Below are positions 1 through 43,475 of a stretch of DNA of 64,000 nucleotides, in pieces (positions within the stretch are counted from its first letter, which is position 1; each line of letters opens with the position of its first letter). Under the pieces are notes generated by a model that ran no database searches, was not told the origin of the DNA, and was given only the letters and a program-made list of their open reading frames with translations. Source of the DNA: Takakia lepidozioides (lineage: Eukaryota > Plantae > Bryophyta). A program made the position numbers and the translations under genes. The DNA lies in assembly GCA_030704615.1 (NCBI GenBank), contig CM060734.1, positions 38,626,001 through 38,690,000 of the forward strand, read 5' to 3'.

Positions 1-566
1 TCCAAGCTCTTCAATACTCTAGGCTTGGTTTCACATCATCATGGATAGAATTCTCTTCTCTTTGGAGTCATCTTGAGCTTCTTGATGCTCTCCAAGTGGT
101 TGTTTTTGTTGTCTTCAAGCCCTAGCCTATGTAGCTCCTTGGCTTTTCAGCTTCCACAACTGCATGCACCACCTCATACACAAGGAATGAACTTGCTCAC
201 GTCACCTTCTAGCTCTCCTCAAGCTTGAATTGGAAGCCATTCCCTAAACTCGTGCACATCCGAGCCAAATCTCTCCTCGCCTTCCAGATGCGGAACTCTG
301 GACACCAGAGGCCTCCGCACACATGCTGACAGCCCTGGCTATCTTGTTGGGATCCCTCGATCTTCTTACAGCTTGCAACATCAACTCAGACTTATCGGGA
401 CCATTGCCACCAACGCCACCCCGCAAGAACTCCCGATATCTCGTTTGTTGCTGTAGAGCTCGTATTTGATCAACTTCCCGTCGATACCGTAAACCTCTCT
501 TTCAAGGAAGCCACTGGAAGCCTCAAAGTGCATAGTCCCATGACTTGTGTGTGGATTCTTGTTACA
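1..566 (-). mobile_element. Probable LTR fragment (truncated by window start)
   Basis: Ends in ...GTTACA at 566 (TGTAAC on the minus strand, a typical LTR terminus). No credible ORF. No partner LTR in the window. Confidence 0.35.
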
Positions 567-1586
567 AATGACTGTGGGGATTATATTTCTACGCCGTTAG
601 AGTTCGCACCGATACTAACGAGGCCATCCTGTCATCGTCTTCTATGTCCCAAACCGTTAATATGGAAGGTTGAGCCTAAACCCAGATATTTGAAAAGCTG
701 ACATACCGTTAAAGAGTCTTCCAAAAACAGTTGTTAAGCAGTTATGTGCCTATACCGACCCAAGTGAAAAGATGGCGGAGGCGAAAGTATTGGAATCCAA
801 TGTCATCCCAACTTGTTGAGGCACATGGAAGCCGACAATGCAATATTGAGTGCAGGGTTGTAGAAAATTCGGCGGAGAACCAATGATACGTGGCATGTTG
901 TGCCGCATATGAAGAGTTCAAACCGGGAAAAACCAGCAGAAGCTAGCCTAATAACTCATCCATCCAAATCGAATTTATTAACCAAGCAATAGTAGTACTA
1001 ATGGCCATACCTAACTAGTTCAAGACGGCGGCCACTGCCGAAAGGACAAATGTGCATTTGTGAGGTGGACACGTATGCCATGAACACATGCATAACGAGA
1101 TCGAGGCCCCGGCTGGTACTAATCGCACGACGTCTCGCAGCCCAGTAGTTCGTGATATTAAGCTGGAGAGTATCAGGAGACTGAGTTCCCAACAAGAGAG
1201 TGGAAGACGTAGAAGATAGTATTCTTTTTTCACTTCAGCGAGAGACAAGAAGAAGGCGAGAGAGAGAATGAGAGCTCGCAAGCTCACATGACGATGAAGG
1301 AGATAGCAGAGGAGAGCGCGGCCCTGGAAATAGCACATGGCGGAGGAGGACCAGCCGCGCGGAGAAGCTAGTGAATGAGGGGATGAAACAGCAACAGAGG
1401 GCGACCCTGACGACACGGACACAGAGGAGCCCGACACCCTTTTGAGGAAGCGCAGGAAAGGAAGGAGAACCAATATATATATATATATAATATTATTTTC
1501 CACTTGTGGCCCTCCAAAATTGAGTGCGTTGACGCACACAGTTTCAGAGGGCCACAAACGCAGCTGTGGTTCGTCCCCCTTGAGTC

Positions 1587-2420
1587 ATGCTTCTGGTTTT
1601 GGAGGGTAGTTCATGTTTGCTGCCTGTCTGGACACGCTTACTTCCATTGGGCAAATCAAAACCCTTCACAACTGAGTGCGTTGACGCGCTCAATTTCAGA
1701 CGGTCTGGTACCGGATGTTTTGTCTGTCCTTCCATTGAGATTAGCTTCCGGTTTGGGGGGGGGGGGGGGGATTCCTCTTTCGGTGTCTGTATGGACATGC
1801 CCATTGGCAGCCAAGAATGGTGGAATGGTGTCAACAGCTTATATCTGACGAAGGGGGACTGTTCGGGACAAATGGTAATCTTCCACTCCGATAAAGGGTA
1901 GCATTCTTCTCTTGTCTGCTTCATTTTATTTTTCTGTTCACCCATCCACTCAAAGGGGTGAAGTTGCACTGTTCTTTTGCCCTTTTGTATGCATTCGCTC
2001 ATTTGTGCTTCGTATTGTCTTCAGTGCAGACTCGCCTTTTTGAAACCATCTGTCTCGTCAGGGTGCACCCTTCTTCGACTCTTGTTGCAGTGAAGGAGTT
2101 CAGGCTTCATGGGAGAGGTTGTTTCATGAACAATTACATGGATTCGAATGTCTGTTTGAGAACGAATGGAACACCATGGAGAGGGGCCAAGGAGAAGAGT
2201 CCAACTTTTATTCAAACTGTTATTGAGACACGTTCCCATCGGGGGGCGTGCATCGTCGACCTGACTCTTGGAGCAGGTTTGACATCTCTCCTTCTATGGT
2301 CTTTTTTCCCTTAATACACAATTTGTAACATCTTAGTAACACAACTTTGTCTTGCAGGAGCTTCGTACCATGCTTGCAAGGCAGCGGACCGACATTTGTT
2401 GATCTGGTGTGTTGCAAGAA
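1587..2420 (+). pseudogene. Degenerate beta-class N6-adenine/N4-cytosine DNA methyltransferase-like gene (N6_N4_Mtase), intron-containing
   Basis: Removing GT-AG introns 1875-2029 and 2277-2357 keeps the frame: ...GVCMDMPIGSQEWWNGVNSLYLTKGDCSGQM|TRLFETICLVR...NGTPWRGAKEKSPTFIQTVIETRSHRGACIVDLTLGA|GASYHACKAADRHLL. This resembles the HPxxKPxxLxxxLIxxxSxxGDxVLDPFxGSGTTxxAAxxxGR motif X/I region. DMPI may be a degenerate DPPY-type motif IV upstream. Confidence 0.65.
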
Positions 2421-2712
2421 GTATGGTGCTGAAATGGCTCACAATGTGTCGACACTGAAGATGAAAGCGAAAGTGGAGTGTGCTGCACAGTGGAATGTTG
2501 CAGTAACCAGTGGGAGAAAAAAAAAAAAATCAAAGATCTGTCTCATATCTGCTGTGTTGTCTTATTCTACGCTGCTTTCATTAGTCTACCTTTCCCCAAA
2601 TGACAGACATCATGGATTAAATCTTATCATGTGCTTCATGAGGGATTTCCTCCAATTTGTGATGTTTGTGCAAACGACATTGATTGTTGTGCTTGGTTCA
2701 GATAAATGTTAG

Positions 2713-2885: not shown

Positions 2886-3131
2886 AGTATAAGCTCTCTT
2901 CTGCACTTCGCCTCGTCGCCCACATATGGTTCCCTATGTGCCGAATGCGCAAGTCCGCAGCTGTAGGCACCCTTCTGCCTATTCGGTCCACGGTTATAGG
3001 TCCATGCCTATGGAAATGACGTGGTGTCAACCACGCTGGCAAGGTCTGCTGACGTGGCGTCAGACCCGTGAGCCAACGTGACAATAACTGCTGACGTGGT
3101 GTGAGCCTGGCTGTGCTCACGCTCACGCGGA

Positions 3132-3715: not shown

Positions 3716-5059
3716 TATGTGAAGTCAGCCGGCCCTGCCAGAAAAGTGAGCTCCCGCGAGCTTGAAGTTTGAAAATTCAACGGTCACTAAAAGAAACTAT
3801 GAAAAAACTAAAGTATTTGATACACAAGGGATGAAAAAACCACATAGGGAAAAGCTTGCTCTTCAAAGTGAGCAAAGGAAAAAAACCCTAGGTGGAAAAA
3901 CCCCAAGTGCTTACATGGTGATGCTAGCACCTAGCACGATGCTTCAAGGTCGTGTTACAGGCACTACGGAAGTTCCACATCCCGGTATGGACGAATCTAC
4001 ACTATGATGACCTCCACATCCGCTATGCATGACCGATTGTACGACATCACAGTTTCAAATTTCCCCAACTGCACCTGTCCTGATTTTGTTGGCATGCTTA
4101 CAACAAGTTTGGGAAAGACAGGAAAATTTATACCCTGCAAGCATCTGTAATTTATCTTCTTGAACAAAATGGTTTGTGATCCCAGACGCGACATCTTTAT
4201 TCACCAGGCCACCATGAGTTTCAACGAGGTGAATAAGAGCACATAACATCCTCTTCACTTTGGTCATCTGCAATTTCCATTACTGGATTTCACAAGAATT
4301 GAAACTTGAACTTGATGTCCATTCGTATATTTGGTGCCAATGTAGCCTCCAATTATATTGTGCAATGTGTGCCATTTCTTTCTTGTGTGTAGTCATTCGA
4401 AAATAAATGGAATGGATGCGAATGCTTTCACAAGTCGTTTTTGCATTTTAATTTTTGGTGTTTGGATGAATGAATGCCACGGCTATGGGCTATAGGCCCC
4501 TCGGCTATAGGTGCTATATGTTTCTGATGACATGGCATCTGGCAAGTTGTCCAAATGCCACGTCATTTAGACGACTGCCACGTCAGCAGGATAAAGACAT
4601 GTCAGCATGCCCTCACCACGTTAGCCTCACGTTCATGCCACGTCAGCGTGACCCCACGCTCAAGCCACATCAGCTGGTGCGAGCCTGCACTCACGGCATG
4701 TCACCATCGCGTGAGCGTACGCTCTCATGCTCATGCTCACGCACACGCGGAAGTCGCGTCCGGGGCGAACGCACACAAACGAAATTTCCTTTATCCCACA
4801 TTCATCCTGCAGGTATTTTCAAATGCTGAAAACTTCATGGCACCATTTTTTGCACCACAGTTCTACTGAAGGAGTGCAGGACCCGGGTGTACTCTGAGGA
4901 GGGCTTCTTTTAAGGAAGGTGTTATCCGGGGAAAGTATAACAGGGAGTTGACATTTTTTTGACGCTGGTGGGTAGTCTCCTCTTTAGGGAGGAGACAATA
5001 AAATTTTCAAGGGCACTGTCCCTGTTCATTACAAAAAAGAAAAAGAAAAAGATCATGTT

Positions 5060-5250
5060 ATATTGATAACTGTTGTACGGGACTCAGTGGTGTTCCACTT
5101 GGATAATGACATATTGATAACCGGGATTTTATTTTATTTTATTTTCTGGGACCCTTCTATTGATAACCGCCACAGTTTCCAAACCCCATAGCAAAGATGC
5201 CTTATCCGGACCTTTCAATATGCCCAAATTCTCATACCCGCCCAACACTG
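5060..5250. mobile_element. Right end of a CAGTGTTG-family hAT MITE (left end not found)
   Basis: Ends CCCGCCCAACACTG at 5250, with repeated ATTGATAACC motifs just inside. Confidence 0.55.
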
Positions 5251-5656
5251 GTTTATTCCCCTTCCTCTACCGGGATTGCTTGAAACAAGGGATGTCAGCC
5301 AGCGAAGCTTGCCTCCCGAGATGATGAAATCTTCTTTAGAGGACCTAAATAATCTTAGTCATCCAACACATTCACAAAACCATTCATTCACACTCTCAAG
5401 TACATCAAAATTATGTCATTGTTGAGATCCAAAATCACCACCGCCCATGGCTCAAGGGCCTTGCTTAAATAGAAGTGCCAAAGGCTAATCAACAAGTAAA
5501 AGACCATGTGTCATCAGACTAGAGGCTGCTCAGATTACAAGTGATGTGCGAAAGAAATAAAGGTCCTCTAAAGAAGATTTCGTTGTCTCAGCAGGCAAGC
5601 TCTGTTGGTTGACATCCCTTGCTTCAAGCAATCCCGGTAGAGGAATGAGAATAAAC
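5251..5656. repeat. Inverted repeat with ~96-bp arms (5251-5346 / 5561-5656) around an LTR-derived spacer
   Basis: The reverse complement of 5561-5656 aligns with 5251-5346 with scattered substitutions. Spacer 5357-5549 matches 8906-9089. Confidence 0.85.
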
Positions 5657-8600
5657 CCCCTACACCGGAATCTTGATGGAGATGCGGGGTAACTAATTTC
5701 GTTAGCAGGGAATGTATGTTGTATGTTGTATCTGGTAGGCGGTAGAGTGTGTGTGGCAGGAGCAAATGAATTAGAAAGAGTGAGGGTATCGAAATGGCGG
5801 CTACCATTGTGCCTTCATTGTGCACAATAATGAGAGAGAAGAGTGCTTGTCTACCTTGGCTGCCCTGCGTCCTGAGAACAAAGCTAACGTCAACCATGGC
5901 CTCCAACTTTGCTTTTGAGTTGTTTGAATCCCTGCTTCTAACCAAGTTCAAAATTTTGAGTCTGCATATATTCATGAGCTTACCCGAAAGTTGCGCCTCG
6001 AGCAATGTATATTTGTGGACTACCCAGAAGGTGAACCAATTCCCCACCCTGAATTGGAGCTAGAGACGCCCTCTGAGTTTTGGGTGAAAAACTTCGAGGA
6101 GACCATTGCGAGAGAGGTCGCCAAGGTCATGACTACCAAGACACAACGAAGGGAGCAATGCCGCAAGATCTGCGAAGTGTTACAAGGGGCCTGGGCTGGA
6201 CATTTGCTACAAACTCTACATGCCAAGGAGATTGTGCTTAAGCTTCTTTTCAGCGAGGCCAAGGAACGATTGCGAGGGGGGCAAACCCTTAGTAGGATTG
6301 AGCTCGGCATCCCTCAGTTTACATTGACATGGAACTAGGCATTGAGCTTGAAAGTTTCTTACCGCCTCTTAAGCCCAGTCCATCAAGGTTATGGGAATTT
6401 GTTAAAGGGGGTACTGCAGTGTTGTTTGCAAACCTTTGGTTGTCGATTCCTCGTGCTCCCACCTGAGATCCTACCTAGGAAGAGGTAGCAGCTGGGATAA
6501 TTGCTAACGAGTTTCCTCACTGTGCTAGTGATGTGGTGGTGTTTCCAGGTGTGGACTTCCGCCAAGAGAAGGTGGGGTTGTGCAATCCAACCATAGTCGG
6601 GTGCTATCATGCCCATACTCTGGTGGTTAAGGAGAAGGTTATCCGTGTTATATTTGTGCGTGTCACTTTTTGGTTCAAGACCGAAAGAGGGGTGTGGCAG
6701 TCACTTGGTGAGGGTGTGTACTTGTTTCACAAGCACAAATACATCACCTGACACTATGTGGCTGACTGGGAGACGTATCTCCGTGCCCCATCTAACATGT
6801 AAAAGCCTCTCCTTTTCTTATGTCTGTGTGGACAAGAGCCATGCTAGATGAAGAGGCTGAAGAAATGGTTGGGCTAAGTGAGTTGGAAGCTCGTGCAGCG
6901 GAGGAGAGGGAATGGATAGCTGCTAGTGAGAGAAATAGAACAGAGTGAGGAGAGTTGACCGTAGATGCTAAGCAGAAGGGCCTTGCGGCCATCCCTGAAC
7001 CAGCAGTTGATGTTGACGAATTGTGTGAGGCCATGGGGGTGAATATTTCAAATTGTCTGCCCCCTCATGAAGATGTTGATTAATCAGAATAGTGCCCCAA
7101 GCATTGTTGTCAAGGAAATCCATGAAAATACTGACGAAAGTACTTGACACCAAAGATGACAACAAGTCCTTCTTTGTTAGTGATAGAGTAATTTCTTTCA
7201 TGTTTGTCAAGACGTCGATGAGAGGCATAAGCCACAACATGTCCTTTACCATCCTGAATCTGGCTAAGGACAGTGGACACAACGAGCTCAATGACATCAG
7301 TCTGCAAAATGAAAGCCTTGGTGAAGATAAACCAACACAGTCCAGCAGATGTCAAAGATATCTTGAGTTTTTCAAATTGTTGAGTTCTCACTAGTGCCCC
7401 ATATAAAACAAAAATCCTTAGACAGTAAACGAGTGAGAGGGGCAACAATCTTTGCAAATTGAAAGATGAAACGGTGGTAGTATGAACCTAAGCCAAGAAA
7501 GACCTTAATACACTACTTGTCACGAGGGATAGGATACTCCCAGGCAGCCTTGATTTTGCTGGGGTTAGGTTGAATGCCTGCAGCTGAAGAGCAAGTGGCC
7601 TAAAAAGTGCAAATTCTCCATGCATAAGTCGCATTTCTTGGCTTTGACCTCGAGACCAGCGGCCCTGAGTCTGCACAAAACTCTTTGCAAATCCACCAGG
7701 TGAGCCTCAAAGCTAGATGAGTACACATTGATATCATCAATTATACCAGAGCACACTCCTATCGTAAATTGCCTAAGACAACATCCATTAAGCGCTAGAA
7801 AGTGGCAGTAGCATCGCACAGCCCAAAGGGCATTGTCTCAAATAGATTCCCATTCTACAAGTGAAAACAGTTTTTTTCTTGGCTGCAGTGGTCAAGGGCA
7901 ATTGCCAGAAACCAGCTGCAGTTAAGTCTAGGGAGGAAAAAATGGTGGCTCCATTCAACTGATCCAGGGTATCATTGATCCGAGGCATACTAGGGTAAAT
8001 GTCTCGTTTAGTGATAGCATTCAAGTGACGAAAGTCAACACAAAAACGAGTAGTCTAGAGGGAGTAATGACATCAACATCAAGCATGCGAGTAATCTCTC
8101 TTCGATCACAGCTCCCTCTCACGAATGCTCTCGTGGTAGGCATATTGTTTAATGGCCCAGGGCATATCTTCAGTAATGATGTCATGCTACAAAATGTCAG
8201 TTCTGCCCAAGTCATGGGGTCCGTGACTAAACACATCAAGATCAATGGCCTTTAAACAGCGCATGCAGCTGAGCTTTTTGTGGATTAGTGAGATGATCTC
8301 CCACCTTCACATCATAAAGGGTCTGCTGAAAATGAGCCTCATGAGTAGCTGTAAGGGGTTGGGAAGCAGTAGATCCCACATGGGCGGCAAAGACTTGGAG
8401 TTGATCAGCAAGAGAATCCACCATACTAATGTCCTGCAGGGTCAAGGCACTTTGAACCGAGGCAATGTTATCGATGAAGAGGGAAGTGAGTCTGGCAAGG
8501 ACCTGACCTTTGCGGATACGCATAGGAATGCGCTTAGGGTTGATCACCAGAAGACGAACCTCCCTTTTGAAGCCCCTGTCAATAACTCCTGAGGCCACCA

Positions 8601-40856: not shown

Positions 40857-41458
40857 TGTTGGAAGTAATTAAACATATCTAGAAGACTAGGAGTCTTGAA
40901 GGCCAAAGGTTTAGAAGACTAAGAGACTATCTTGTTTAACTCACCTTTGGAAGGTGAATGGCTAGAAGGTGGATGGTCACCATAGTGGAAGTGGAAGTGA
41001 CCAAGTAGGACTTCCTAGATACCTTCTTGTACAAGCTCGGGGGTGAAACCACTAGTCTAAGTGTAAGAGTATGATGGTGGCTTCTATGGTTGGGAGGAGA
41101 GCTTTAGTTTTAGCTTTAGTCTAAGACTTTAGTTCTTGTTCATGTTCTTGCTCAATTCTAACATGGTATCAGAGCCATTCTTCTCTAGGTGAGAATTGGT
41201 AGTTGAGATTGAGAGAACTTGATCATGGCTGGAGCGTTGTCTTATAGCAATCCTCCTTCTATGTCTATGACGAGTGCATTAGATGTGAGAGTGGAAGATC
41301 GATTCAATGGAGCTAACTATCAAACCTGGAAGTCTATGATGGAGATGGTCCTTCTAGACAAAGATCTATGGGGAGTGGTTGATGGATCCGTCCCAAGACC
41401 TGACACTATTGTTGGCCAAGCCATATGGGGTATGAAAGATCAGAAAGCAAGAGCTAAT
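40857..41458 (+). mobile_element. Ty1/Copia 5' end: LTR 40857-41163, tRNA-iMet PBS 41164-41176, gag start
   Basis: TGTTGG...CTAACA LTR, then TGGTATCAGAGCC. Gag RFNGANYQTWKSMMEMVLLDKDLWGVVDG...WGMKDQKARA. Confidence 0.93.
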
Positions 41459-41829
41459 TGGAGAGTGATTTTGTGCATGGATACAGACTTGGAGCACAAG
41501 TTTTTTTATGTGTCACTGACGGATACAAATGGGAAAAGCACATTAGTGTCTCCAGAGATCAGTGATACCTGGGATGAGTGCTAAAAAGATGCTAATGAGG
41601 AGTTCGAGCTAGGCCTCATGATGGGAAAGAACACCCAGCAATTCTGCAACCACATGTTCTATGTTTGGGACGACAACCACCGATTGCTGGCATGGATGTG
41701 ATACATTCAGAAACATCATGCGAAAGACAAAGACAAGCATGTTGCTGGTTTTGGATCCTGAAAACGACATCGCTAGGCTTCTTACAGCTATGCACGACGT
41801 GAACAAGTAAGTCATCCTAGAGACTTCAT

Positions 41830-43475
41830 TCCCTCAGTAGTGCGGCATGCCCATGAGGAGTTCGGACATTTTGGAGTGCGACGCACTCATAGTTTACTGC
41901 AGGGGCAGTATTGATGGTGTGGTATGCACACAGAGGTGCAATAGTTCGTGGCTAGGTGCATGGTGTGTGGTAGGATGCGTGCTTCATTCAACGCCCCTAC
42001 ACCACAGTTGCATCCATTACCCATCATGGGATTGGGCTACAGGTGGAGTCTTGACTTCGCGGGGCCATTGCCACTGACGATGCGTCACCAGAGATATGTG
42101 TTGATGATGGTGGAGCACTTCTCCAAATGGATTGAGTTGGTTCCATTGCCTGACAAGGCTAGTGAGGGGGTTGCGTATGCATTCCTGGATCGTGTGTTTA
42201 GCCGATTCGGTGCTCCAGCTGAGGTATTCACGGACCAAGGGAGAGAGTTCTTGGGGGAGTTTCAGGCTTTGTGTGATAAAGCCTTGATAGACCACTGTAC
42301 CACTTCTCGGGATCATCCTGAGGCCGATGGCTTGGCAGAGATAGTGGTTCAGACAGTGAAGAGGGGTTTGCGCAAGTATGGCTTGCAAAAGGGACACCTG
42401 GGAGATTGGGATCTTAAGGTACCTTGGTTAGCCATAGGCTACAGGTTTAGCAAGCAAGCATCACTTGCCTCCTTCTCACTATATTTTCTTCTCTTTGGCC
42501 GAGAGCCGGATTTGCCTGCATCTATTCGCAGGGAGGCTGCAGTAGTCCTCAACCTTGATGATCCGGATGTGTGGACACAAGCATGTGTCCAGCGGGCAGA
42601 GTTGTTCAAGAGAGTCATGCCTATGGCTTTTGAGAATCTTGCTATTGCCTAACACCGAGACACATTGAGGTATGTCACTATACGTGGAGGGGGATATCGG
42701 CCAGATGTTCGACGTTTTCACCCTGGGGACTATGTGTATCTGCAGCAGACAACGCCTACGACCTTGGATGTCACAACAGGACGTATGATTCTAAGGGTCA
42801 GGGAGGTGTTGCCTTCATGAGTGTTGATTCTGGAGGGTCGAGATGGCATGGTATGGAAGGACCATGTGCGCAATTGTGCGTCATGTCACCTTCCACATGT
42901 GGATGGAATGATAGATCCCAACCTTACAGTGGTACCTGCAGGGTTGCGTTGCATGCTATGTGGGCATGCTCGTGGTGCCGCCACTATGCTGGTGTATGAT
43001 CGATGCTCAAGAGGTTGGCACATGGGATGCTTGACACCACCTCTTGAGAGGGTCCCTGATGGAGATTGGTTATGTCCACACTGCTTGGGATAGTGGCAGC
43101 TAACAAGACATAGGAGGCCAAGCTCATAGGAGTCGATACTCGAGATCTCAGACTGAAGTTCACAGGTTTCAAGACGGTGACTAACGATGAGGCAACTCTT
43201 ATACCCGGCCTCTTGATCTATCGAGTTTGAGTGTAGTAGGGACAGTGGTGGAGGACTTAGTGAGGCTATGGCCACTATCGCATCTTGTGACTACCTAGAC
43301 TTAGAGGGACCTAAGCACCAGCTAGGGGGGTGATTGTGATGGACTAGTGGCTGCACTAGTGGTGGCTAGTGGTAGCCTAGTGGTGGACTAGTGATAGACT
43401 AGTGTTTGGTGTGCACATGTGTTGTGTGGTTTTGGACAGCGATGTAGTTGTGTAGCGATATGTATGCGTACGACA
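41830..43475 (+). mobile_element. Ty3/Gypsy 3' half: HHCC zinc finger, integrase core, C-terminal PHD finger, PPT, start of 3' LTR (43335)
   Basis: HAHEEFGHFG...RCMVC; WSLDFAGPLP...VEHFSKWIELVPL...FGAPAEVFTDQGREF...HPEADGLAE; PHD CMLC..ATMLVYDRCSRGWHMGCLTPPLERVPDGDWLCPHC (42947-43084); AGGGGGG tract then TGTGAT. Several internal stops; LTR end uncertain. Confidence 0.92.

Follow-up and report, generated by a model that had tools for sequence, protein, structure and literature searches.

A relic of a multicopy, intron-bearing gene with an amino-methyltransferase-like domain in the genome of Takakia lepidozioides

Giant DNA transposons of algae carry ParB-like and DNA methyltransferase (MTase) accessory proteins, and arrays of inverted repeats lie adjacent to them (PMC12477816; bioRxiv 10.1101/2025.02.11.637652). 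For instance, Sola1-1_Ec32 of Ectocarpus has a 1104-aa protein that is ParB-like and also a methyltransferase of the N4C/N6A type (PMC12477816), and the genes PAG2 and PAG3 are found in Plavaka and Mutator elements of Bostrychia and Chondrus (bioRxiv 10.1101/2025.02.11.637652). The role proposed for these proteins is to bind and modify the element that encodes them (PMC12477816; bioRxiv 10.1101/2025.02.11.637652). The ParB-methyltransferase genes of brown, red, and green algal transposons were reported only in 2025, without a functional test (PMC12477816; bioRxiv 10.1101/2025.02.11.637652), and a limited literature search found no report of such transposon genes from land plants. Host 4mC methyltransferases that are expressed and functional, with demonstrated 4mC activity, are exemplified by MpDN4MT1a/b of Marchantia (bioRxiv 10.1101/2021.02.12.428880) and N4CMT of bdelloid rotifers (PMC8885841).

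The DNA analyzed here, referred to as the window, is a 64-kb stretch (64,000 nucleotides) of the Takakia lepidozioides genome. An original prediction, made from the letters alone, placed in it a relic of an intron-containing gene with a domain related to the beta-class N6-adenine/N4-cytosine DNA methyltransferases, and this has been borne out by homologs and by exon profiles. With a probability of roughly 0.85, window positions 1504-2400 are what is left of the 3′ part of an intron-bearing gene, in a copy that is truncated and dead; the gene is multicopy, and its C-terminal domain descends from bacterial or phage beta-class (N6_N4-type) DNA amino-methyltransferases. By analogy with the algal genes, it was probably an accessory gene of a DNA transposon.

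Structure of the Locus and of the Gene Family

The remnant and its immediate flanks consist of the following features, in window coordinates.

1504-1557, no strand: palindrome with 26-nt arms, a 2-nt spacer, 85% complementarity, and the core TGAGTGCGTTGACGC; covered by multicopy DNA contigs
1662-1703, no strand: second, more degenerate copy of the palindrome, 152 nt downstream and inside the originally predicted exon 1; 83% identity
1755-1770, plus strand: run of 16 G, the source of GGGGG in the predicted peptide; length variants among copies at 1756
1818-1874, plus strand: probable 19-codon tail of the N-half exon, WWNGVNSLYLTKGDCSGQM, ahead of the donor GTAATC; in ungapped register with relatives L018, L006, and L001
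1875-2029, plus strand: intron 1, phase 0, GT..AG, its acceptor conserved in homologs
2030-2276, plus strand: X-I exon, from "FE.I" via motif X (GAKEKSP...IQTVIE) to motif I (IVDLTLGAG); open frame with homology
2277-2357, plus strand: intron 2, phase 1, GT..AG, within the second Gly codon of the GxG loop
2358-2400, plus strand: opening 14 codons of the last exon, (G)ASYHACKAADRHL, with no homology past 2400
2400-2516, plus strand: piece of a gene for ribosomal protein L32e (~18 nt from the end of an intron and 98 nt of exon, then an A-run), from Pfam and contig matches

Relatives were sought using phmmer with exon 2030-2275 as the query against 1.84e9 protein representatives. Five genuine relatives were recovered (P0001-P0004 and P0006; E 1e-5 to 6e-4), all of them fragmentary ORFs on eukaryote-like contigs in which homology ends at DLTxGxG, the point of intron 2. 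A further match, P0005, was repetitive and spurious, and the C-terminal FYTSCMSSVGSAFFGI of P0001, considered as a candidate exon 3, proved to be the wrong frame of GASLHACRASGRHFLGFEE. The loci compared come from an ENA assembly (L001, L002), JGI metagenomes (L003-L008), NCBI assembly GCA_030155525.1 (L018), and ENA (L020). In tblastn, the exons of L006 and L018 match window positions 1982-2356 at E 1.7e-16 and 7.7e-16, and the following exon matches 2351-2401. A word-indexed protein search with the window ORF returned no match, and the 64-kb window holds no second copy of the X-I exon.

The entire gene is present on one strand in L020, and fuller copies also occur in L018 and L001. In these copies, the order is a DGNHR N-terminal domain (termed ParB/Srx-like by other authors), a long linker, the N-half exon, the motif X-I exon, and the last exon. 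The N-terminal part of L020 begins at a Met, includes FVFDGNHRLQAW, and gives way to a long low-complexity linker. The N-half exon reads ...SVDLVIADIPEG...FCKKYLHDDGALLVFQ...ISLFWTCYNGMMLTHP... and is a single open frame at 1029-1427 in L018, while the last exon follows the form G(A/S)(S/T)LHACRASGRHFLGFEED..., with the pattern GAS..A....GRHF.G.E.D and an acidic tail at its end. L007 and L008 hold a short decayed relic only, and decayed relics of the family are found in several other plant-like contigs. In L008, a plant-like metagenome contig of 66 kb, the relic (8001-8111) is a decayed motif X exon (EAWKGAREKSPTLM*TLIET...), and a plastid ribosomal protein S9-like gene lies ~4 kb away.

The upstream domain bearing FVFDGNHRLQAW is present in L020 and L001 and absent from the 1504-2400 copy. 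When ParB was sought in this N-terminal domain, neither Pfam nor the PDB profile search gave a match to it; the PDB search with the DGNHR exon returned only a LIM-domain-binding protein (E 0.09). In the Atlas search, the N-terminal ORF of L020 (363-905) fell with eukaryotic DUF3684/DUF8348 clusters (score 0.97, with low recognition of 1566), not with ParB. A separate relic of the N-terminal domain lies elsewhere in the window, at 41458-41807 on the plus strand (LESDFVHGYR..., FYVWDDNHRLLAWM*YIQ...); it is matched by tblastn from L020 at E 3e-10 and has two in-frame stops. Its first part shares ORF 41219-41584 with the N-terminus of a copia-type gag (Pfam 1.6e-8).

Both introns of the window copy can be read directly from its sequence. 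GT-AG pairs are found at 1875/2029 and 2277/2357, the three pieces join in frame, and the peptide quoted in the original prediction is present. Conservation of the introns in homologs, on which that prediction also depended, is evident: their positions and phases match in the window, L018, L020, L006, and L001. These five share the intron 1 acceptor, which reads cag and then AC(T/A), followed by T-(R/L)-x-F. The second intron splits the glycine loop just as had been claimed, and its position and phase are identical in all five. The stretch is thus multicopy and of eukaryotic origin, as the original prediction held, and does not come from contamination.

Exactly 19 codons separate x-W from the donor of intron 1, which begins GTAAT in the window, L018, and L006, while L001 has GTCAGT (read by eye). 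Within this tail, residues W2, N6, L10, and Q18 are common to the window, L018, and L001, and L006 has all except Q18. Positions 1818-1874 are probably homologous to the tail of the family N-half exon, a judgment that rests on the register and the four shared residues, the score itself being not significant. Other genomic copies carry the 1818-1874 stretch but diverge upstream of 1821.

At the 3′ end, the third exon had been drawn from 2358 to 2420. It is homologous up to 2400 but not beyond, with tblastn from exon 3 of L018 reaching 2351-2401 only. Past this point, other genomic copies read F-GMEGDADIF, which is the family consensus, in loose contig ends; such ends mark breaks at ~1821 and 2400. 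What follows 2400 in the window is the RPL32 fragment, which matches Pfam Ribosomal_L32e at E 0.018 over profile positions 75-107 of 108. High-depth contigs from runs X6 and X7 match 2418-2516 at 90-95%, with flanks reading ...LLLMHNR and ARLRSQEDE. RPL32 mRNAs of the same species, which are highly expressed, are 90-95% identical to the 2400-2516 fragment (plus strand). The +1 frame after 2395 (TFVDLVCCKKYGAEMAHNV), considered as a frameshifted GRxFIGIE..Y strand, belongs to this same fragment. The RPL32 piece joined at 2400 may be captured or filler DNA.

Retained in the window copy are two palindromes and the poly-G junction, then ~19 codons from the end of the N-half exon, intron 1, an X-I exon short of 12 codons, intron 2, and 14 codons at the start of the last exon. 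The copy has lost the N-terminal domain and, with the motif IV exon, most of the catalytic half. The X-I exon is 12 codons shorter than in seven of seven relatives, where the corresponding stretch is VDP...D.LYN or DPISGLSIP. The copy is chimeric, has an internal deletion, and lacks both ends of the gene; the truncations, the deletion, and the RPL32 junction leave it unable to encode a working protein. The original prediction was right that the copy is dead but not in its reasons, namely, a short spacing after motif IV and a drifting C-terminus; the actual causes are the 5′ truncation, the 12-codon deletion, and the break at 2400 onto the RPL32 fragment.

Copies, Transcripts, and Transposon Surroundings

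In DNA run X1, which derives from the source organism, 237 contig pieces align to 1494-2800 at 90-100% identity, so the stretch is multicopy. The palindrome core is likewise repeated, with four matches at up to three mismatches where 0.11 would be expected. The two palindromes sit directly upstream of the gene remnant, and two copies of ~54 nt make up a minimal array. In addition, a contig from X5, a plant-metagenome run, spans 1597 to 1818 via the poly-G, so that the palindrome/poly-G junction is not unique to the window copy.

Transcript evidence was sought in contigs, as opposed to raw reads, and among the contigs searched there are no splice junctions of either intron. In two runs guessed to be RNA, coverage is essentially confined to the RPL32 piece. 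A low-depth contig from X7, a run guessed to be RNA, covers window positions 2087-2127 and shows a diverged exon copy in which the 12 codons are still present (...CFINDKFDPVVD; ...GRGCFINDKFDPVVD...). This undeleted exon implies that more intact copies exist in the species, and these may be transcribed.

An unlikely alternative to random decay is that 1494-2400 belongs to a non-autonomous derivative that arose by internal deletion, consists of palindromes and the gene tail, and was amplified, full elements mobilizing it in trans. The DNA contigs at 90-100% identity over both the palindrome and exon regions would fit such a derivative, as would the junction shared by the X5 contig (1597-1818). 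However, Logan contigs are short and none of them bridges the whole stretch, other copies diverge upstream of 1821 and downstream of 2400, and neither element ends nor target-site duplications were found.

Neither a transposase core nor terminal inverted repeats or target-site duplications could be identified around the window copy. Pieces of LTR retrotransposons are located near the 1504-2400 copy. Some 1.6 kb downstream of it is a fragment of a SWIM zinc finger (4004-4147, plus strand; Pfam E 5e-4), with no transposase core adjoining it; zinc fingers of this type are seen at the C-terminus of MULE/FAR1 transposases. The motif GCTGACGTGG(C/T)GT forms direct repeats at 3026-3105 and inverted repeats at 4606-4647, and these could be subterminal repeats of a small element around the SWIM fragment. 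Farther along, a 97-nt inverted repeat (5250-5346 and 5561-5657; 88% complementary, with 214 nt between its arms) has a MITE-like or foldback appearance. At 7110-7457 on the minus strand, the reverse transcriptase of an LTR retrotransposon is represented by its RNase H domain (RT_RNaseH_2, E 7.5e-19). A retroelement integrase core occupies 41948-42649 on the plus strand (rve, E 2.5e-13) and is followed ~170 nt later by a PHD finger at 42821-43090, also on the plus strand (E 4.5e-9).

A different origin, as a host gene fragment, is improbable. Here, the remnant would not be mobile cargo but would have decayed from a paralog of an amino-methyltransferase domesticated by plants, the sperm 4mC enzymes of Marchantia being examples. 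Eukaryotic host genes with N4C methyltransferase homology are indeed known (bioRxiv 10.1101/2021.02.12.428880), and no transposase or terminal repeat is tied to the window copy. Against this stand the hundreds of diverged contig pieces in a single DNA run, two unrelated relics within one 64-kb window, decayed relics in several plant-like contigs, an altered catalytic motif (DIPE), and palindromes beside the copy like those of algal transposon genes. With no junction contigs found either, the observations do not describe a low-copy, expressed host gene with a canonical motif. The dead copy of a multicopy gene, probably once a transposon accessory gene, is the preferred reading.

Relationship to Amino-Methyltransferases

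All profile and Pfam comparisons were made exon by exon, and the reference alignment consisted of nine genuine N6_N4 MTases, namely, YhdJ of E. coli and eight phage enzymes from annotated records. Using hhalign, the N-half family profile aligns to template columns 34-116 (E 2e-5, probability 77). The X-I family profile aligns to columns 194-221 (E 3.5e-6, probability 88), scoring 41.2 versus a maximum of 22.4 in 200 column shuffles, and the last exon aligns to columns 221-251 (E 2e-3), scoring 24.2 versus a maximum of 19.6 in the same number of shuffles. The three placements are strictly collinear and abut one another on the beta-class reference. The X-I exon of the window, taken alone, falls on the same columns 194-221 with E 0.011.

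The motif X/I call of the original prediction finds its confirmation in the X-I profile match, motif X followed by motif I (…KP..L...I..s.pGd.VLDPF.GSG) being present as GAKEKSPTFIQTVIETRSHRGACIVDLTLGAG. In the N-half alignment, SVDLVIADIPEG falls on SvDli..DPPYg, KKYLHDDGALLVF on rvLk..G, and LFWTCYNG on vW.k.n. The family also has the circularly permuted order: the region of motif IV precedes X-I, and motif I leads straight into the GRxFIGxE strand. The window copy has no motif IV part, and its strand following motif I is broken off at 2400.

Further searches point in the same direction. A reference HMM run on L006 ranked the three exons, in collinear order, as the top three of 117 six-frame segments, and on the whole window it placed 1895-2311 first of 2181 segments. 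In an Atlas language-model search with the L018 N-half exon, 24 of the 30 matches were to PF01555 clusters (0.92-0.93). PF01555 is also the sole methyltransferase family in Pfam for any exon (E 0.17 at 148-188 and E 0.11 at 189-212). Its gathering score of 26.7 bits is reached by no exon, the best family exons scoring 12.2 and 12.9 bits. The exon-by-exon PF01555 check is thus sub-threshold by score, while the profile positions are the right ones and the hhalign matches are collinear. When the X-I exon was searched by sequence profile against the PDB, no methyltransferase was returned, only a spurious TetR (NalD) match. Of note is that PrmA, an unrelated class I enzyme, is also matched by the motif I part taken by itself (E 0.0026), whereas the N-half and last exons do not match it. 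Since motif I is generic in this respect, the assignment depends on collinearity, on the N-half exon, and on motif X. On these sequence comparisons, the relic belongs to a bacterial-type, amino-methyltransferase-like gene with introns.

The original prediction went further and proposed a full three-exon relic (1587-1874, 2030-2276, and 2358-2420) in which CMDMPIG (~1788-1808) was a decayed DPPY close upstream of motif X/I. This form of the gene is very improbable, even if its pieces join in frame via GT-AG introns and the last 19 codons before 1875 resemble the family exon. Exon 1 as a whole did not hold up, as only those last codons (1818-1874) align to the family: BLASTP of the predicted exon 1 against the family N-half exon gave no match, and its Smith-Waterman scores did not exceed those of shuffled sequences. 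The remainder, 1587-1817, has no homolog and contains a palindrome and the poly-G run; this 16-G run is probably a non-coding junction sequence. A search of window positions 1-1800 for N-half, linker, or N-terminal exons found nothing similar. The alignment register also contradicts the DPPY remnant. The family equivalent of motif IV, SVDLVIADIPEG, lies ~75 residues upstream of the conserved Trp, while CMDMPIG directly precedes this Trp and is thus not a motif IV remnant. At that position, other genomic copies read SGMRI (in full, KASGMRIIKT followed by WNG), and L018 reads SASLEIS (KSASLEISLFW). Finally, the chance that non-coding transposon debris merely mimics motif X/I is negligible: Pfam finds nothing at E up to 10 for the three window exons and the 118-aa ORF, and the window alone reaches only E 0.011 against the MTase profile, but homologs at E 1e-16 and intron positions and phases conserved at five loci from different assemblies refute it.

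Possible Function and Comparison with Known Systems

The catalytic motif of the family is not the canonical one. In L018, L020, and L006, motif IV is DIPE(G) where DPPY is expected, and the presumed site in L001 is DKHA (read by eye; L001 alone gave no significant profile match). Judging from this non-canonical motif, amino-methyltransferase activity of the family is doubtful. Production of 4mC or 6mA, as implied at the outset, is not supported, since the best-preserved relatives have DIPE(G) and not (D/S/N)PP(Y/F/W).

Were intact copies to be translated, their product would bind the palindromes of its own element via the N-terminal domain and would then methylate nearby DNA. Alternatively, given DIPE in place of DPPY, it might be a non-catalytic SAM/DNA-binding module. 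A broader proposal, speculative and rather unlikely, is that DNA transposons of land plants carry a conserved two-domain accessory protein in which a palindrome-recognizing domain is joined to a DIPE-remodeled, MTase-derived domain that marks or shields the DNA of the element. Under this proposal, the palindromes would serve as cis-acting sites, which would account for the amplification of internally deleted derivatives made of palindromes and the gene tail, such as the window copy.

If intact copies are active, DNA marks other than 5mC would have a source encoded by transposons, or else the copies would constitute a system of self-recognition. In importance, the family outweighs the locus: a bacterial-type amino-MTase-like domain, altered in its catalytic motif and interrupted by spliceosomal introns that are conserved, is present in many copies in a plant genome, and relatives occur in other plant-like assemblies. 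The conserved intron positions and the exon profiles also provide handles with which intact copies can be located.

With the bacterial and phage beta-class N6_N4 MTases (PF01555; YhdJ of E. coli), the family shares the order of motif IV, then X-I, then the GRxFxGxE strand, and its three exons are collinear with these enzymes. M.PhiCh1-I, a ParB-MTase fusion, has an N-terminal ParB_N domain. Unlike the bacterial and phage enzymes, the family has spliceosomal introns, many decayed copies, and no restriction partner; it has DIPE(G) for DPPY and DLTxGxG for DPFxGSG, and every exon is sub-threshold in Pfam. With MpDN4MT1a/b and N4CMT, it has in common that all are eukaryotic genes derived from prokaryotic amino-methyltransferases. 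In contrast to those host genes, the family is multicopy, decayed, probably located on transposons, and non-canonical in its catalytic motif.

The algal accessory genes differ from the family in that the latter occurs in a land-plant-like genome and has DIPE(G) as motif IV, with a window copy that is devoid of the N-terminal domain. Compared by description of the algal proteins, both are eukaryotic, intron-containing, multicopy genes with a prokaryote-type, amino-methyltransferase-like domain. Both also have an N-terminal domain, which in the family (L020 and L001) bears a DGxHR motif of putative ParB/Srx type, and palindromes or inverted repeats lie beside the gene in each. The locus itself is dead debris of a gene family that resembles genes known from algae.
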